A stretch of DNA of 63,886 nucleotides, the filler included, from Bigelowiella natans CCMP2755 (Eukaryota; Protista; Cercozoa), in assembly GCA_000320545.1 (NCBI GenBank). It is 4 parts of 4 records of this genome, joined end to end, with 100 filler letters (N's around TTAATTAATTAA, not from the genome) between each part and the next. Parts side by side here need not be neighbours in the genome. Positions count along the whole stretch, not along the records: positions 23,539 to 33,904 come from ADNK01000644.1; 3 more parts are not named here. One strand, given 5' to 3'. The position numbers were made by a program, and so were the translations under genes. Shown piece after piece: positions 23,539 through 33,904 of this stretch. The stretch's first letter is position 1. Each line of letters starts with the position of its first letter. The notes under the pieces are model-generated. The model searched no databases. It had not been told where the DNA came from and worked only from the letters and a program-made list of their open reading frames with translations.

Positions 23539-23581
23539 GTCTCTCTCTCTCTCTGTTTCTCTGTCTGTATATCTCTATCTC

Positions 23582-23693
<112 letters not shown>

Positions 23694-23789
23694 TATTATC
23701 ATGTCAGGAGAGATATAAACGAATATCGTTGGCAACATCTTCCCAACTCCTCATGCTGTCACTGTCTTAAAGAGACCCAGTGATATTAC

Positions 23790-26419
23790 CCTGCGACAGC
23801 TCCAAGGACGTGTATGAGCATGATCGGAAGCTGCAGTTGCATGCCTTCCGCCATGATAACCGGCGCCGACTGCGCCACCGCAGACCCAACTAGCGCACAC
23901 GTGGAGAGCACGCCAACGACGGGCGTGAGCGGCATGATCAAGTCTACTAGCTTTGGCACGAACCTGATAGTAAATTGTGTTAAGAGCAGCTTAATCAGAG
24001 AGCCCTTTACACTGCAACAGCACCCTTACAGGTCATGAGCACGTATCTCCTTCACCCCCCCCTCCCCCCCCCCTTCTACCCACCTTTTAATTGCCATTCC
24101 CGCGGCCATGGGGATGAGGAATATCTGTACGGTGGACATCGCTATTCCTACAGAGTCCAGCTGCACCGACTCTCCAAGCATCACCGAGGAGATGATTGGG
24201 ATCATAAACGTGGCGCCAATGGTGGTAGAGAGCGTCATCAGGATTGAAAGCGCGACGTCTCCTTTCGCAATGTACGTGCAGAGGTTGGAGCTCTGGCCGC
24301 CATTGAGGCTTCCAACCAGTACTAACCCCGCGGTGAGTGATTTGCGGAGCGCAAATGCCTTTGCCAGCCCCAGAGCTAGCAGCGGCATGATAACATAGCA
24401 CGATACGAATCCTATAGCAATGGGGATTGGCTGGCTCGCAACGCGGATTAAGTCGCCAACGGTCAGCGTCACGCCCATCGAGAGCATCAGAGTTGCCAAG
24501 GCGCCTGTGAACCTAATAATCGATGATGACAGTTTATTATAACAATGGAGGACAAGTTGATGATGATCAAAATATACTGACGGCAGCAGTCACAGCAGTC
24601 AGAAGAACGATGAAAGAGCAGAGTGGTGAGGAGGAATGATGATGGTATCGAAGGAAGAATTGGCAGAAGAGACCATCATCATCGCAGCTGGCACTGTGCG
24701 ACAACTACAGTCCCAGCCACTAGTGTTACTATTTTCGTGCGGTATCATTGCTACAGTATTATATTACCATTGCGTCGTAAACCAGTCAAACGCTTGCGGT
24801 TTGAAGAAACCCAAGGCGGCGCTAAGCACTGTCCACAAAGGAAATAGGTTTGTGGCCGTGTCCATGATGCTACTGTACCCACGCCATATCGAGCTCTTGA
24901 ATTCCCTGATAAGGAGCTTGCGCATCGTCACTATTCCGCTGGTTGTGTTGCTGGGGGGCTGATCCGCCACCATCAGCTCGCGGAAATCGGCTAGCCGTGT
25001 AAACACACGCTCCTCCTCTTTGGAGAGGGGCATTTTGGAGACCTGCTTAAGCGCAGCCTGCAGGGTGGCATCGACATCCATCAGGATGCGACAAGCTAGA
25101 TCGAGCTGTTTGCGGTTCTCCGGAGTTATCTCTAGACGACAGTAGTCCCAGAGGAGCTCTTTCTCATCGTCTGTGAGCTCCAACTCTGCCTCCAGCTCCC
25201 CGATCTCCTGCATGATGTTCATTTGCGCCTCGCTCAGGCCTAAGGGGAGCAGTTGCTGCAGCGCCCAGAATTGCCGTGAGTTAACACGCTGCTTTTTGGC
25301 CGTTAAAAGTGCTCGGAAATCCTCTCCAGAAAACACGAGGGAGCGATCAATCATTGCACACTGCTCAGGGCCCAGCAGCTCCTCTACGGTACCAACCTCC
25401 CCGGAGACATTGACTGGCGTGCTTAGAATTGCTTCCATGCCGATGCTGCCGTCTGGTGGGACGTACACACCAGAATTGCGCAGCCAGAGGCACATCTTTC
25501 CAAACGAAAAGAAGCTTTCGAGGTTTAAATCCATCCGTGCCACTCGATTCAGCGTCATCTGCAAGCTCGCGTTGACTCGCATATCGCATACTATGTCGAA
25601 CGCACGTCGCTGCTGATGTGTTAAGTCAAGTGCCCCGAGGAGAGAAACTAGCTTTCTCCTCGTCTGAGCCGTCAATTTAAGCTTCGCTATCTCCATAACC
25701 ATGCTGAGATCGGAATCCGACAGCTTCATTCTGTATGCTGACGCTACCGCCTCGCGCTGTGGTCCTGTGAGCGGCGAGTCGATGACAAGCTGCATTGCTC
25801 TCAGGTCACTCTCTGACAACTGGGAATCTCCAATCCTCTGCATTTGTTCTTTTAAAGTCCGCGAAATTCCCCCCTCCCATAAGCTAGTGCTTGAGACCAG
25901 GCCCCTCCCCATCCTGGTCACTTGCGGTGTTATTGTCTGCGCGGGGGTATGGCTGTTTTTATACCGACGCCAGCTGGGCGCAAACTGCCTGGCACTCTTG
26001 AATATATTACGAGTTTTGCACATGTATTCCGTGTGGGGGTTGTTGTGGTGCCTGCTGTGGTAGCGGTGGCTGCGTTGTCCTGCCGATAATCCTGAGAACC
26101 GGGAGCCACATGAATCGGCTCTGGTTCGGGAGAGTATGGGTATTCGCCTGCCGCTTCCATACCATTTCTGATCATATTCATAGTTCTGCTGGCGGTGCGT
26201 TTGAGGCGAAACTTTAGCCTGGGGCCAGGTCGTCCCAGCTCCCGCCGTCCGCAACGCCGAGCGAAGCTGTGCTAATTTGCTCCGACTTATGAGAACTTCC
26301 CCCCCATTGTCCCTTCCACCCCCTTGATCAAGGGTGTTGGAATTGGTACTTAGCAGAACTAACGTCAATATTGACCCGAGGAGTGCTATCCATGAAATTT
26401 CCCCAAAGCTATTTGCCAT
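23790..26419 (-). CDS. Bile acid:sodium symporter (BASS/SBF) family transporter with bipartite plastid-type leader and long helical-repeat N-domain; 3' end lost toward the gap
   Basis: Exon 1 (26419-24768) ends MDTATNLFPLWTVLSAALGFFKPQAFDWFTTQ and splices in frame to exon 2 (24512-24084) WFTGALATLMLSMGVTLTVGD..VIMPLLA..GLVLVGSLNGGQSSNLCTYIAKGDVALSILMTLSTTIGA, then exon 3 (23963-23790). These are BASS2-like transmembrane motifs. The N-terminus is a hydrophobic stretch followed by an R/S-rich segment. Confidence 0.9.
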
Positions 26420-26505
26420 ACTATACCAGCACGCTTAAACTACCCCTCTGGCAGTGGCCTTTGTGAAAGGAAAAGTTCCTCGTTCTGGAACTAGATATCC
26501 GAAGA

Positions 26506-27042
26506 GTGTCTTCTAGCTACCACTACAATCCGCGCACCGGCACGATGTCCATCGACCTTCAACCTCTCGTTCGCGGATGGGTGAGGGGGGGTGCTACCTT
26601 CGATGGTCGCCACACCAGGTTGGAGTCTCAGCAGCGTTTATTAGGGCTCCACATTCAGACTCAAGCACATCTCCTGGAATCATATCTGAGCCAAAAGCAA
26701 TGCAGATGTGCTCTACGTCTTCCTTCATTTCATGCTTCATCGAAATATCCACGGCATTATGACTATTTCAAGCAGCACTGGGAGAGCGAAGGACCTCTGC
26801 TGTATTTTGCCAGCCGAGAAAGAGTTCAGACCATACCTATGCAATGTGCCTGGGATCGAAAGGGGATTTCGAGTAATATGGATACTTCAGATACAAAAAT
26901 TGATCCAAAACATGATGTTTCAGGATCGAGACTTAGACAGCGGCGTATTTTCAGGCTTCTCGACCGAATAGTCACCGATGCGGCGACTATCTGTAAAATT
27001 CTTGGAGAGCAATCTGGAGAGGAAAATCCCATTCTTTGTTAA
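26506..27042 (+). CDS. Hypothetical protein (178-aa uninterrupted ORF, no recognised domain)
   Basis: Only ORF length and protein-like composition support it; it lies between two confident genes. Confidence 0.3.
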   Translation: MSSSYHYNPRTGTMSIDLQPLVRGWVRGGATFDGRHTRLESQQRLLGLHIQTQAHLLESYLSQKQCRCALRLPSFHASSKYPRHYDYFKQHWESEGPLLYFASRERVQTIPMQCAWDRKGISSNMDTSDTKIDPKHDVSGSRLRQRRIFRLLDRIVTDAATICKILGEQSGEENPILC

Positions 27043-27206
27043 CATGACGCCAACGTATATCTGTTGTCGTATGAGGAAAAGGAGAGCTACTCGTGCACCG
27101 AACACCAAGTACCTCGCTGTCGAGCACGAAACCTTGTCGTTGTATAAGGATTAAGGTAGTTTGGTACAGAATCCTTGCAACCACAAGTTACTCGGGATCT
27201 GTAAGA

Positions 27207-27639
27207 ATGGCGGCCGCAAGCAACATGTTCAAGCCCCTCCTACCTCCTGCGCTTCTCATGGTTCTAGCGGGGACCATGATGGTGGGATATCTAGGCACGC
27301 AACAGCACCCTACATCATTGTCATCCTCGTTGATGGCCAGATCTCGGGCTTCGTTGGTATCGGGGCCCACCTCAGTTCGAAAGTAATAGAGTTAACGTTG
27401 AGCTAGTGTTAGTCGTTGCAAAAAAACTATTAATGGATGCCCGTCACCATTCGGGAATCACTAAATCTTTGATAACCTAATTGTCCGGTGATTTATGATT
27501 GAAATTGATTAGATTAAAGACGTCTGATCAACCATGCTTCCCGTACCAATACATTCATTTATTAGGGGGCTGTTCTCCACGACAGCTGCATTTGGACTAT
27601 TCGGTGGATCTGGTACCAATTCGTTTATATAAATTCTTT

Positions 27640-27675
<36 letters not shown>

Positions 27676-28729
27676 GATGTTGTTGCGATGCCATCTGCAT
27701 TCCATCCCAGCAGCATCTGCAGTGAAAGCCCAATATCCAATTGTTGGCGATGAACAAATCATGTCGCAAAAGGAGCACGGAACAAATACAAAGCCTGTGC
27801 AGGTGCTTAGAACTATTCATTTTGCTAACAGAGTTTGTTGAAGTACAGCAAGTGATGAACCATGTTGTTCCGCCCTTAATATTTTAATGCAAAATTCTTT
27901 TTCTGAGGCCTTCCTTTCCTCCACACACGCATCATTTTCTTCCTTCTAGCTGGATCTTAGGTATGGATGTGACCGCAAAGTAGCAGACAAAATCTGCAGT
28001 TTCAACCGCCACTATGCAGAATATAGCGGGTACGCCATGCAGTTATCTTCTTTCTCTGATATCACCTTTCTTTGAACTTTTTCGCCCTTCCTTTTGAACA
28101 CACCATCTAAGAAATACTTTCCTCCTCCTCCTCCTCCTCCTCCTCCTCCTCCTCCTCCTCCTCCTCCTCCTCCTCCTCCTCCTCCTCCTCCTCCTCCTCC
28201 TCCTGCTTCCCTACGCAGATACTTTCGAACGACCAAATGGCTTTCCGAGGTTGACAAGACGAAGGAAACAACCTACTACGATTCTGTCACAGGAAAGGTG
28301 TAACAATATAAAAAAAGCCTTTACTTTTTCGTTGATATTTCGAAATATGGATGGTGACACTCAAAAACTTTTGCAGCCCCTCTTCATCGCTCCAAAAGGG
28401 AGAACATTTGACGAATTCCAGCGCGAGTCTGAAGCTCACGGGTGGCCGAGTTTTAGGGATGAAGGTTAGGCGTGAACTTGGCAGAGATAATAGTTTCATT
28501 GGTGTCAGTGTCATTCGTACTCTATTTGTGCATTTCTTTGGTCAGATTATCAGAGATATAATTATTTGTTCGTGTTGTTTTAGAGGTGGTGTGGGAGAAC
28601 GTGCGGTGCCTCCGGGATGGCGAGTGCGTCTCCGTAGATGGAACTCATCTGGGTCACAATTTGCCAGATAGAAGTGGGAACCGATACTGCATTAACCTAG
28701 TATCAGTGGCTGGTCATCCCACGATTTAG
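27207..28729 (+). CDS. MsrB/SelR-like methionine sulfoxide reductase family protein, probably plastid-targeted
   Basis: Leader MAAASNMFKPLLPPALLMVLAGTMMVGYLG..SSSLMARSRAS. Mature exons YPIVGDEQIMSQKEHGT..|LDLRYGCDRKVADKICSFNRHYAEYSG|..YYDSVTGK|PLFIAPKG..HGWPSFRDE|EVVWENVRCLRDGECVSVDGTHLGHNLPDRSGNRYCINLVSV*, with the GWPSF, HLGH and RYCIN MsrB motifs. Confidence 0.88.
28121..28204. repeat. (CCT)n intronic microsatellite, about 28 units
   Basis: Directly visible; it generates spurious poly-Pro and poly-Gly ORFs. Confidence 0.95.
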
Positions 28730-29531
28730 AAAATTGATGAATAGTCGATAGGATACAAGGAATCGCGTGTTTCCGCCCCGACTGAATCAATTCAATTGAA
28801 TATAATCGCACTTGCGATACAGTATTTGCAATGCTGCTGCGCGGTGGGCAGCTTGTCTGATGCTAATACAGTGTATAAGTGTTGTTGTATAATTCCCATG
28901 CAAGCCAACATCCCCCTTCAGTGCATCTAGTATCTGGTAAAAGTAGCCATTTCCCCTTCACAGTACATTATGTGTGATGGGCATATCTAGATATCTAGAC
29001 ATCGTAAAGGCTACGATACTGCGTGCGGCGTGCGGCCATGTATGTAAGAATTATTCAGCTACAAAGCCATTGCAAATGTCTAGATGTGTCACCAGATCAT
29101 CTAGTAACTCTACCATGTAGCATAACTAGATAAGCACATATATTATACACATTTGCTCGATCTATATTAGTGTATATATTAAATATTAGAGAGATAATAC
29201 GCTGTATGCGCATGTATTGTTGCATGTCGCACATTTATTAAACGCAAATAATTACCGCTCATTATTAGGACTACGCAACAATCATATGTACATACCTGTA
29301 GCTATTACAAGCACATGATGTGCACTGCATGTACGTAAATGTGTACGTAAATGTGTGTCCATGTGTCCATAGTGGTTTTTACATTTACAGCTGACTAGCT
29401 AGCAGTACCATGCTCATGCATGGGTGCGTGCGTACGTGCTGTTTGTTGCGATAGCTGCTGGTACATGGCTATATGCTACGCCTGCACATTTTTTCTTGAT
29501 ATAAATTTTTGGCAACGATGTTGGCTACCGA

Positions 29532-31348
29532 TTAATTGTTGATAGTGAGTGCATTAAGCGCGAGCAAGCGATCCACTGGTTCTGGCACCGTCGACACTGC
29601 GCACATGCTATACCCTGAAGCAAGATCGTCTTCAGAGTTTCCTCGCTTTCTCCCTCTTGTCATCAGCAATGATGAACCAGTTGGGAGACTGCTGTTCTCG
29701 AAGCCAATTGAAATCGCACACCTTTAAATGGATTACAGTATATCACTTCCTAAGAATGCTAGGCCAAAACCCATCACTTGAAAGGATAGAGTATTATTAC
29801 ATGCTCTCGCCAACATCTTAACGGGATGTGTTGGTAAAAGAATGCAACTAATGTGCGTGTTCTCATCATCACCACTGACACTCGAATGCCCACCTGGTCC
29901 CAGCAATTGGGTTGTTTTTCAGTGAAGCCAGCCGTGACTAGATCTCTGGCGAGATTCTCGTATTCTACAATGTAGGGTGCAAAACCGATGCCGCTGCAGT
30001 GTTCAATGATAGGCTTCGAAGCTACTCTCAGATACACGTTGCATTCCTTCATCTGTACACCGCAAAGAACAGGTAAGCACGAGATGACTGGGAAATGATG
30101 AACATGCAAGAATGGTTTCGAATCGAACACTAGGTGATACTCCCACAACACTAATATGTGTGACCTCATGGGCTCGCAACTGCCTGCAGGCGAAGAAAAA
30201 CGTGCAGCCCTCACAGCGTTCAATGTATACGGGTCCCGACACCGGTCCAACGTAAATCTTACAAGTCTTCAGGTCGGTCATGCGGAGGGTGCTCAATCCA
30301 TGGAGAATGTGTATCTAGAGAGTATTAGAAAAATAAATTCACGTTGCCAAAGCGGCGAAGTCCGTAATGGACAGAAAAAGAAGGACCTCAGAGTTTGCCA
30401 TCTCAGATAATTTTATGTTTCTATTCTCCTTGAAGTCTTCCTCGTTCACCTGGGGAGAATCGGCGAGTAGTGTCCAGTCAATATCAAGGAAGAGGTTAAA
30501 TGTAGCAGCTTGGTGAGTTACTAATAAGCTCTATGTTATACCTTTACTATTTGATCAGATTTGTTCTCTATTGTGAACATAGTATCTCCTTTGACGAGGC
30601 TGAAGAGTTTCTCTCCCTCGGTGGATACAGTTCCAGCACCTGATGGTGCTGAGCCTCCTTCCTTCTTCTCTTTCGGTTTGCGTTTTTTGCTAAATCGAAA
30701 TCTCCTTCTTGGAAGTAGGCGAGACTTTTCCTTTGAGGCGGTGTTCTGGAGCTCCGAGACAATTTTCCTTAAATACCACCGTGAGGGATATATTAATCCT
30801 TTTACTTCCCCCACTTTCTATCTCACCCTCATCTTCCTTGCGCGCGTGTGGCGTGGGAACTACCTTGCTTGCTGGATTTCGTATGGAGGTAAGAAAAATG
30901 TGCTCGCAGCTGCGAAATGCTGCAGCTCGAATATCTTTGCCATGATGGCCTCAAACCGGCCTCTTAATTTCTCAGCTGGGATTTCCTTCGCTGTCTCTAG
31001 TAATTAATAACCTATCAGCCTAATAACGAGATATTTGATTGTTGGTATTGACCTAGAAGGGCTATGATAGTTTCTTTTTGCTGTGCAACTGTTCTTGAAA
31101 AGTCCTCGACATTCTCGCCAGCACGCTTCCGCTCTGATTCTATCGCCGTCTTCCTCTTCCTCTTTATGGTGGGAAATATGAATCTCGTTACCAGAATCCA
31201 TGAAAATGTGTACCAGATAACCACATGAAGGAAAAAAATAATTGTCAACTACCTCTTTCTCGCTCCGGTTTTGATTTCTTTGGTGTATTCTGTCGATCAC
31301 GGCAGCTTTCAGCTCGTCAGCGGAAAGCTCCGTCGAGGGGTCCGCCAT
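29532..31348 (-). CDS. TBCC: Tubulin-binding cofactor C
   Basis: Exons MADPSTELSADELK..|..AASTFFLPPYEIQQAR|..LLPRRRFRFSKK..|STLRMTDLKTCKIYVGPVSGPVYIERCEGCTFFFACRQLRAH..|CNVYLRVASKPIIEHCSGIGFAPY..NCWDQ|VCDFNWLREQQSPNW: TBCC N-terminal helical bundle plus the C-CAP/TBCC domain. Confidence 0.92.
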
Positions 31349-31889
31349 GGTCAGAATTTCAGCCTATGCAATGTTAGATTTATTTGACACAAAGGGATAA
31401 AAATTGGTCTATTTGATAAGAGCGTCAAAAATATAATGGGAATTTAAGGATATATTAACGGCATTTTTATTTCTATACTCCACGAAACAGCCCCACGTTT
31501 CCCGCGTTTTTTGAATTTCTTCGACTTTTTTATCATACGACAACGTCCTCATTATGTCTCATTGAAAATCTCCTGTTTGAAGCTATGCCGAGAAACATCT
31601 TCATAGAAATTTGGAAATGAAGGAGATTTTACTAGACATTGGCCTGTTATCCCGAGAACTCACAACAATTCTCTCGCGCAACCTTGGATTTGCCTGGAAA
31701 CTCAGATTCGATTAAGCTGTAGTTGATACAAGAGATACCTTTCGTTTAAAACAATATTTGTAGAATCAAGATAGACGACAGATTAATTCTAGGGCATTTT
31801 ATTATATTAAGTATTAATTTAGCTGAAATCCAGTCTGATCAGAATTTCCTTCCCTTATCCCCCAAAGCCCTTCCTAAGCTATTGGACTC
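31349..31889. promoter_or_regulatory. Probable bidirectional promoter between divergent TBCC and PSMB4
   Basis: About 540 bp of AT-rich interval between head-to-head start codons. Inferred from geometry only. Confidence 0.5.
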
Positions 31890-32931
31890 ATGGAGCTTCT
31901 CATACAAGCTGATGCTCAATCCCGAGCACAACCACGCTCAAGAACAACGTGCGTTGAATTTTAGTTTAAAATTCCTTTTCAACCCTCGAAGGTGCGATCT
32001 CTGTTGATATATTTCTTCATTTTTTGTCTTAGCCAACCGATCGTGACCGGTGCATCTGTCCTGGCGATCACGTACAAAGATGGAGTTATGATGATCTCAG
32101 ATACTCTCGGTAAATATAGTGCAGAAATTAGATAATTGTACCGTTTAATTGGAAACAATATTCGTAGCTTCTTATGGTTCCATGGCACGATACAAATCGG
32201 TCCAGAGGATCGCGAAGGTCAACGATGGTGCAATAGTTGGAGCAAGCGGAGAGTTTAGCGACTTTCAGTATATTAAAGACCTCCTCGAAGATCTTACGTA
32301 AGTTTATCTCATATTTCGGAATCAAGGGAAACGATAAATTCAAAGGCGATTCAATTTAGGGATGAGGAGTTCGATATGGATGACGGGTGCGAGATGTCTC
32401 CAAGCCAAATCCATAGCTACCTGTCACGTGTGATGTACAATCGCCGCACTAAAGTGAATCCGTTGTATAATCAACTGGTTATTGGTGGCTATGACGCAAA
32501 AAAAAAGACTGGGTGAGATCATCATTTCGACCATCTTTTTGAAAAAATGCGAATTAACATTTCCCCATCAGATACCTCGGTGCAGTTGACATGTATGGGA
32601 GCACTTTCAAGGAAAATATTGTTGCTACTGGATACGGTATGTATATGGCACTCCCTCTTCTTCGCAAGAGCCACAGTCCAGATATGGAAGAGAAGGATGC
32701 TAGAGCATTGCTTGAAAAATGTATGACAGTTCTCTTTTACAGAGACTGCCGAACTATCAATAAGGTGATCTACGAGATATTTCTGGGCATATTCCGCATG
32801 AAACTGACTGTGTAATTTTTCAGTACAATATTGCTAAAGTTACTGCGAGTGGTGTAGAGATTGCTAAGCCGTACTCTCTTCCGACAAAGTGGGACTTCAA
32901 GCGATTTGTCAATCCTCACTTAAAAGAGTAA
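31890..32931 (+). CDS. PSMB4: 20S proteasome subunit beta type-4 (beta-7/PRE4)
   Basis: Exons ..RSRT|[26 protein letters not shown]|[34 protein letters not shown]..|..[24 protein letters not shown]..|[45 protein letters not shown]|[16 protein letters not shown]: the diagnostic beta-7 motifs. Confidence 0.96.
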
Positions 32932-33904
32932 TTTCCTTAGAGGAAAGCCATCAAGCACCAAAAATCTATGAAATTGATTTCTTGCGTCGTTGTATTCAAG
33001 GTTTTCAAACTGTAAACAGGCTAGCTAAGAATTATATTTCTTTTGTTGTATTATTTACTCCTAAGACCTAGCTCTAGAGCTGTGGTTGCAATCTGATATC
33101 TCTTCGCCGTTCAGACGCAACACCGTTCTGCGTTCACGTGCAAATGAATGGGTGTAGATGCACCATGCATGAATGACACAACTAGAGAACGCTAGAACGG
33201 CACCACACACGCGCATGTCAGCGGTGACAACTAGACAACTCAAGTGCGCTGCTGCAAATATGTGCAACAAATGATGGAACACATGCACTTTGATTTCGTT
33301 GGTACGTGTGCAAATGGGTGTAAGAACATGTAGCGAGAACATGAGCACAAAACCACACATTTTCGTCGCGTGCGCGCGCGGCATGGCCTAATGATCGAGG
33401 GCCTTTGCCGTTCATTTGCGTCACAAACTCTAGAACCAGAGAACTGCATGTTGCACAACGCACGCGCGTGTCGTCAGCAAATCAACAATGATGACAATGA
33501 AGAAGTGTCGGCTCACTTTGCTTGCAGATTCTTGGTGGCTTGCTAGCTTGCTCATCAGTTTGCCATGCTGTCATGCAGGCAATGGTGCAATTGACGCGTG
33601 AACGTCATGTAGCGCGTACCACTACGCGGGCACAAGTCACGTGCGACAACAAAGGTTGTTGCGCGTAAGGTGTTCACAGGCCGAGGCGCTACGTGCACAA
33701 GTAGGCAGGGGGGGGGAAAGGCACGTTTGCTTCCTTTTGAAGAGTTGTGTTTATTTTTATTAAAGATTATATTTTTATTAAATCGTGCACTGCGTAATCA
33801 TTCGCGAAGCTTTCGCGAATGCCGTAACGTAGATATTAATACAGCATAGGCACGTGGGTTCCGGCGGGACTCATGGCACTCCCTTAGCGGTTTAGAGACA
33901 TCTG

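Follow-up and report, generated by a model that had tools for sequence, protein, structure and literature searches.

The closest described relatives of the gene treated here are the short plastid-type transporters of the BASS (SLC10/SBF) family, with ASBT_Yf (4n7x) and ASBT_NM (3zux), relatives of solved structure that belong to the same membrane core family. In the stretch of Bigelowiella natans CCMP2755 DNA that was analysed (63,886 nucleotides; the window), a BASS gene lies on the minus strand of the piece at positions 23539-33904 (ADNK01000644.1). Compared with the short proteins, the long forms to which it belongs add an N-terminal domain of 300 amino acids (aa) and, where full-length, a basic C-terminal tail of 64-119 aa, and their core sits on a longer branch. 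To our knowledge, the control of metabolite traffic across secondary plastids is poorly known, and of chlorarachniophyte envelope transporters we know almost nothing.

Our best explanation is that the gene encodes a long-form BASS preprotein with a conserved soluble domain that regulates the transporter or docks a partner; we put the probability of this reading at about 0.6. Its structural and evolutionary part is very probable. The functional part, in which the domain would be a stromal, net-acidic regulatory or partner-docking element acting with the basic tail, is tentative. The observation made in a preliminary description of this DNA, an unrecognised helical repeat fused in front of a plastid-type BASS transporter, was confirmed; its interpretation as a regulatory or scaffolding solenoid, perhaps connected with the extra membranes of a secondary plastid, was partly supported.

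Splicing and ancestry of the long form

An open reading frame (ORF) of 551 codons runs on the minus strand from an ATG at 26419 to 24768, where its last two letters, TG, are followed by GTAATA. This first exon of 1652 nucleotides (nt) ends with a basic pre-membrane segment and the first transmembrane helix (TM1) of the BASS core (NLFPLWTVLSAALGFF; 24768-24961). The end of the exon, which has the basic flank RKLLIREFK ahead of TM1, is invariant in the orthologues, and it is with the equivalent of this segment that the short BASS paralogues and ASBT_Yf begin. Intron 1 (24513-24767, 255 nt, GT..AG) leads to exon 2 (24084-24512), which belongs to the BASS/SBF core and on its own matches PF01758 with E 2.3e-31 and 109.4 bits at a cut-off of 24.3; the same family match is present in all orthologues. 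Intron 2 (23964-24083, 120 nt, GT..AG), placed by contig joints, is followed by exon 3 (23787-23963), in which the BASS sequence continues.

Logan contigs of 3222, 3284 and 3305 nt, from three runs of three studies, map from 26566 or 26619 to 24766, from 24510 to 24082 and from 23961 to 23787, and then go on into sequence off the piece. What they lack is precisely the two introns, which read CT..AC on the plus strand (intron 1 is skipped in runs X1, X3 and X12), and they show no joint within exon 1. The depth of intron 1 in the transcript runs is about 1% of the exon depth. In mature transcripts the repeat exon is joined to the BASS exons, and the 24768/24512 junction on which the proposed fusion depended is a real splice junction. 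The 5' untranslated region extends at least to 26619. The intron after exon 3 contains a (TA)n run and reaches the edge of the piece, so that the 3' third of the gene is absent from it; each exon of the window gene entered the analysis separately, and the joined protein was represented by full-length orthologues.

Some minor observations concern the introns. Long (TA)n microsatellites occur at 23583-23700, in BASS intron 3 at the edge of the piece, and at about 27600-27640; the first may be the cause of the assembly break there. Contigs of depth 2-3.5 (exons 77-326) cover 24546-24715 of intron 1 in runs X1 and X12 and are unspliced precursor or a DNA trace. In X12 one intron 1 contig continues into unrelated sequence at 24710. 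The raw-read RNA run X22 gave three reads only.

A search of related algal sequences found the same architecture in three other proteins: P0002, annotated as a gene in Amorphochlora amoebiformis, and two proteins from MMETSP transcripts, P0001 (a 'complete' transcript ORF of 866 aa) and P0003 (825 aa, read directly from an intronless 2787-nt transcript contig). The window piece holds exons 1-3, and the transcripts continue; the ten-helix ASBT-type core is complete in P0001, whose alignment with the ASBT_Yf chain 4n7x covers 4-310 of its 312 residues (E 9e-49). Behind the core, beyond the window piece, the long forms P0001, P0002, P0003 and P0143 carry a tail of 64-119 aa with a net charge of +4 to +8, which the short paralogues do not have. 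It contains the motif ARYN.T..PP[ST]WL..KNHL.YYPL..PL[RK]KV, followed in all but P0001 by ..TMED[IL]R[IV][IL]RETSKL. P0001 and P0143 are two 3' isoforms of one transcriptome. The A.amoebiformis orthologue (L001:3001-29881, GCA_054601695.1) is spread over 26.9 kb in no fewer than 31 exons, each about 50-110 nt long, whereas in the window species leader, whole domain and TM1 lie in a single exon; intron density thus differs greatly between the two.

As judged by these alignments, conservation climbs along the protein from the leader over the domain to the BASS core. The leader cannot be aligned among the orthologues and varies in length (about 90 to 180 aa); over the four long forms the domain shows 39-52% identity and about 60 invariant columns; and the core is 79-87% identical, exon 2 of the window sharing 87% with P0001. 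Run X12, which is labelled as another organism, differs from the window by a 3-nt insertion at 26118-26120 and by 14 coding substitutions over about 2.4 kb, and therefore stems from a close strain or sister species with the same gene. Seven of these substitutions (three of them replacements) and the one-codon insertion fall in the 552-nt leader, one conservative change (L372I) falls in the 900-nt domain and six changes, all silent, fall in the membrane part; these counts are small, yet they point in the same direction as the orthologues.

The nearest relatives of the core are short chlorarachniophyte proteins of 280-431 aa (59-65% identical), namely P0023 of Amorphochlora, P0024 of Partenskyella and Bigna1 37506 (P0140) of B.natans itself. 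Next come BASS proteins of diatoms, Chromera and red algae (54-59% identical); no named plant protein was among the best 120 matches to the core. A quick maximum-likelihood tree was computed from 34 rows, with the root placed at the distant P0022 and the window represented by exon 2 only. The four long forms make up one clade with a Shimodaira-Hasegawa-like approximate likelihood ratio (SH-aLRT) support of 100; it is sister to the short chlorarachniophyte paralogues (SH-aLRT 99) and has a stem of 0.81 versus 0.36. Ordinary BASS proteins, the short paralogues among them, pass from the leader straight to TM1, as the preliminary description had said of those of plants, and the short proteins end 20-35 aa after TM10. 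From the tree and from the lack of the domain in the short paralogues it follows that the long form is a lineage-specific duplicate which gained the N-terminal domain and the tail and whose core then changed faster. It is a clear case of a transporter duplicate acquiring a folded soluble domain and a tail that are found nowhere else and are both kept across genera.

Other BASS subclades of the same broad algal clade also carry soluble extensions, helical and repetitive or regulatory-looking, ahead of the core. P0014 (aa 1-300) and P0017 (aa 60-160) have N-terminal repeats of about 20 residues, [AK][AD][DN]P.[LF]Q[EK][HQ].K.......[EA][AM], and the predicted gene model P0010 (Chrysophaeum taylorii) has an RGS domain. 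Homology to the long-form domain was considered and dismissed for the P0014 repeats and the P0010 extension (hhalign probability below 1% for both). Unlike the long form, these proteins belong to other subclades, and their extensions show no detectable homology to its domain; hence the extensions were gained independently, and helical repeats in front of BASS proteins arose more than once.

The helical domain

The repeat units, which had been read at 25819-24978 on the minus strand, are aa 201-480 of the ORF. They lie in an orphan domain of aa 185-486 (24962-25867). Their periodicity is significant: in BLOSUM62 autocorrelation the peak is at lag 16 (z 4.0-6.2 relative to 1000 shuffles) for the window protein and two orthologues, on each half as well as on the whole domain. 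A weaker lag of 32 was seen in module 1 only, where lag 49 follows too. Module 1 (aa 201-305; 25505-25819) and module 2 (aa 363-480; 24980-25333) align with each other profile to profile over 101 columns (hhalign probability 95.3%, E 2.2e-8, 29% identity). Thus the internal duplication, suspected earlier from the resemblance of the two sets of units, is real.

AlphaFold2, run on the domain with a three-sequence alignment, gave a predicted local distance difference test score (pLDDT) of 87.3 and a predicted template modelling score of 0.67, and four of the five models reached at least 82.7. Seven helices are modelled per half, starting at domain residues 19, 35, 51, 67, 84, 100 and 116 and at 181, 197, 213, 233, 249, 267 and 283, i. 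e. at ORF residues 203, 219, 235, 251, 268, 284 and 300 in module 1 and 365, 381, 397, 417, 433, 451 and 467 in module 2. They are 11-17 residues long, one to each 16-residue unit, and all 14 begin directly after a pair of a hydrophobic residue and S/T/N/D, the very feature by which the units had been described. Many units also have E/Q/D three residues past the cap and a hydrophobic residue one further, which we take to be a capping box and a hydrophobic staple. With its textbook N-caps, the domain is a good model case of a single-helix repeat whose unit is very short. The modules are joined by an acidic linker subdomain (aa 306-362; 25334-25504), about 45-56 residues long, in which short strands are predicted (by DSSP, at domain residues 141-180) and whose net charge is -5 to -7 in all orthologues. 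The whole domain has a net charge of -7 to -11 and an isoelectric point (pI) of about 5 in all four long forms.

With the alpha-solenoids (TPR, PPR, OPR, mTERF, TALE, HEAT/ARM) the domain shares tandem amphipathic helices with conserved N-caps and, in module 1, the weaker 32-residue period. It differs from them in its unit, a single helix of 16 residues compared with 34 aa in TPR, 35 in PPR, 38 in OPR, about 30 in mTERF, 33-35 in TALE and about 40 in HEAT/ARM, as well as in being net acidic and in having two seven-helix modules that appear to need each other to fold. None of the repeat profiles of these families matched, the model did not superpose on solved members, and instead of a two- or three-helix unit of 30-42 residues the dominant period was 16. 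The solenoid of the preliminary description gained no support. Module 1 folded alone, with a six-row alignment, reached a pLDDT of 53. This failure and the missing solenoid matches suggest that the two modules pack against one another instead of extending into an open solenoid, and on the same grounds we infer a compact, two-lobed shape.

When the ORF, the domain and a profile of four sequences were searched against Pfam, NCBIfam and PDB sequences, all matches were at chance level, and an hmmscan of the four orthologues at E up to 1 gave one chance-level match to an unrelated family. With the domain profile, hmmsearch in 1.84e9 representatives of about 15 billion proteins returned one cluster, the family's own; a word search returned P0001 and P0002 only. 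Foldseek against the PDB, the ESM Atlas searched by shape, and VIA-align, wide and in a second look, yielded nothing above background, the weak best structural matches being small all-helical domains (HRDC, SURP, DnaA domain IV, CBF3 core). A language-model search of the Atlas with the domain gave no usable match, and full-text searches of the literature found no description of it. The domain is without detectable relative outside one gene family, and its designation as unrecognised stands for all sequence and fold libraries tried. We claim the lack of a known fold for the whole domain only, because the model of module 1 alone was too poor to search with. With a structure that is predicted confidently and matches no known fold, the domain is a target for structure determination.

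Topology and possible roles

The ORF begins, after the ATG, with a signal-peptide-like segment (aa 1-30; 26330-26419) whose hydrophobic core, SWIALLGSILTLVLLST, lies at aa 9-25; the orthologues likewise start with a hydrophobic segment. The following 154 residues (aa 31-184; 25868-26329) are basic, S/T-rich and not conserved (pI 11.2, 25 K+R, 8 D+E, 30 S+T) and resemble a transit peptide. A hydrophobic N-terminus ahead of a poorly conserved stretch that is basic, hydroxylated and poor in acidic residues is the make-up that would be expected, as far as composition can tell, of a bipartite chlorarachniophyte plastid leader, i. e. a signal peptide plus a transit-peptide-like part. With ten helices in the core, as in P0001, the N-terminal domain and the C-terminal tail should lie on the same side of the membrane. 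The basic flanks would fit a cytoplasm-like side, which would be the stroma if the protein resided in the inner envelope in the bacterial orientation. Each protein has 3-6 N-x-S/T sequons, of which all long forms have two in common, the first in the linker of the N-terminal domain (an N-[VI]-S at aa 337 of the window protein, about 25409-25411) and the second just behind TM10 (the pair is at residues 321/816 in P0001, 245/758 in P0002 and 251/748 in P0003). This pair, extramembrane and on one side, hints at possible N-glycosylation during passage through the endoplasmic reticulum (ER).

In the explanation we prefer, the piece would carry the 5' two-thirds of a nuclear gene whose preprotein consists, in order, of a signal-like segment, a basic transit-like stretch, a conserved, net-acidic domain of about 300 aa, the ten-helix BASS core and, in the full-length orthologues, the conserved basic tail. 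Domain and tail would be exposed on the same face, the stroma under the assumption just given, and there the domain would regulate the transporter or dock a partner, possibly together with the tail. This would make the domain a candidate for a lineage-specific regulator, or docking site for proteins, at the envelope, a role open to testing in a transformable relative such as A.amoebiformis, which allows transient transformation. Several points weigh against this explanation. The stromal orientation presupposes that the protein is located in the inner envelope and has kept the bacterial orientation; were the signal peptide cleavable, the N-terminal domain would initially enter the ER lumen, and the two conserved sequons would fit a lumen-facing or inter-membrane position as well. 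The model of the domain is based on three sequences. In the window protein module 1 is basic and module 2 acidic, but a charge complementarity of the two was rejected, as it is found in neither P0002 nor P0003. Finally, the label 'RNA' of the runs is a guess, and their cDNA origin was deduced from the exact removal of the introns.

A more far-reaching version of the regulatory reading is that 16-residue single helices in two pseudo-symmetric seven-helix lobes are a new fold class, invented in chlorarachniophytes, which with the co-acquired tail gates a neofunctionalised envelope BASS protein or couples a partner enzyme to it. We consider this rather doubtful; if true, it would amount to lineage-specific control of metabolite exchange across the secondary plastid. 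Less likely still is an ectodomain facing a lumen or the space between membranes, in which domain and tail would be non-cytosolic, N-glycosylated, and receptor-like or tethering between membranes. The hydrophobic N-terminal signal would suit it, as would the fact that the sole two sequons conserved in all long forms fall on the same side, but the signal is followed by a long, basic, S/T-rich and unconserved stretch as in leaders that go beyond the second membrane, the basic residues flanking TM1 and TM10 agree with a cytoplasm-like (stromal) side, and the conserved N and S/T could be structural. The position of the domain directly behind the targeting leader and its known occurrence solely in secondary-plastid algae could also mean that it is a sorting or import element, helping a polytopic protein to cross or to stop at particular membranes of the four-membrane plastid. 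Yet the long form is a duplicate of a short BASS protein that was kept, and in the short paralogues of these algae TM1 comes directly after the leader; passage across four membranes hence does not generally require the domain. Moreover, the domain occurs on no other protein among the representatives searched, and known targeting signals are of the kind of the unconserved leader, not of a folded, conserved domain of 300 aa. A sorting role, and with it the link to the extra membranes drawn in the preliminary description, is unlikely.

About equally improbable is a domain without function, a tolerated lineage-specific insertion or spacer whose model reflects over-confidence of AlphaFold on idealised helices. 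The few sequences behind the model and the low pLDDT of the lone module would agree with it; protist proteins often carry orphan extensions, and N-terminal repeats of unrelated kinds occur in other BASS clades. On the other hand, the domain keeps its length, its helix register and the invariant columns in all four orthologues next to an unalignable leader, and the comparison with X12, small as its numbers are, shows a single conservative difference in the domain against seven and an indel in the leader. If the domain were a spacer or a glycosylated ectodomain, its interest would be chiefly evolutionary. Least plausible of all is binding of nucleic acids in the manner of PPR, OPR, mTERF or TALE proteins, by which plastid RNA or the nucleoid would be tethered to the envelope. 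The domain is a helical repeat in an organelle protein, and units such as LT..QRR, LTAQTRRK and ITPENRKQ recall the helix starts of TALE and PPR repeats. Its net charge is negative in all four orthologues, however, no Pfam match to such repeats appeared at E up to 1, the model found no counterpart among solved repeat proteins, and the unit is one 16-residue helix, not two to three helices of 30-38 residues.

A neighbouring gene

Elsewhere in the piece, the minus strand carries at 29774-31348 a split gene with a tubulin-binding cofactor C domain. PF07986 was matched in two ORF pieces (30003-30296 and 29774-30250, E about 1e-12) that lie in different frames, which implies an intron or a frame change between them; a possible first exon is located at 31004-31348.

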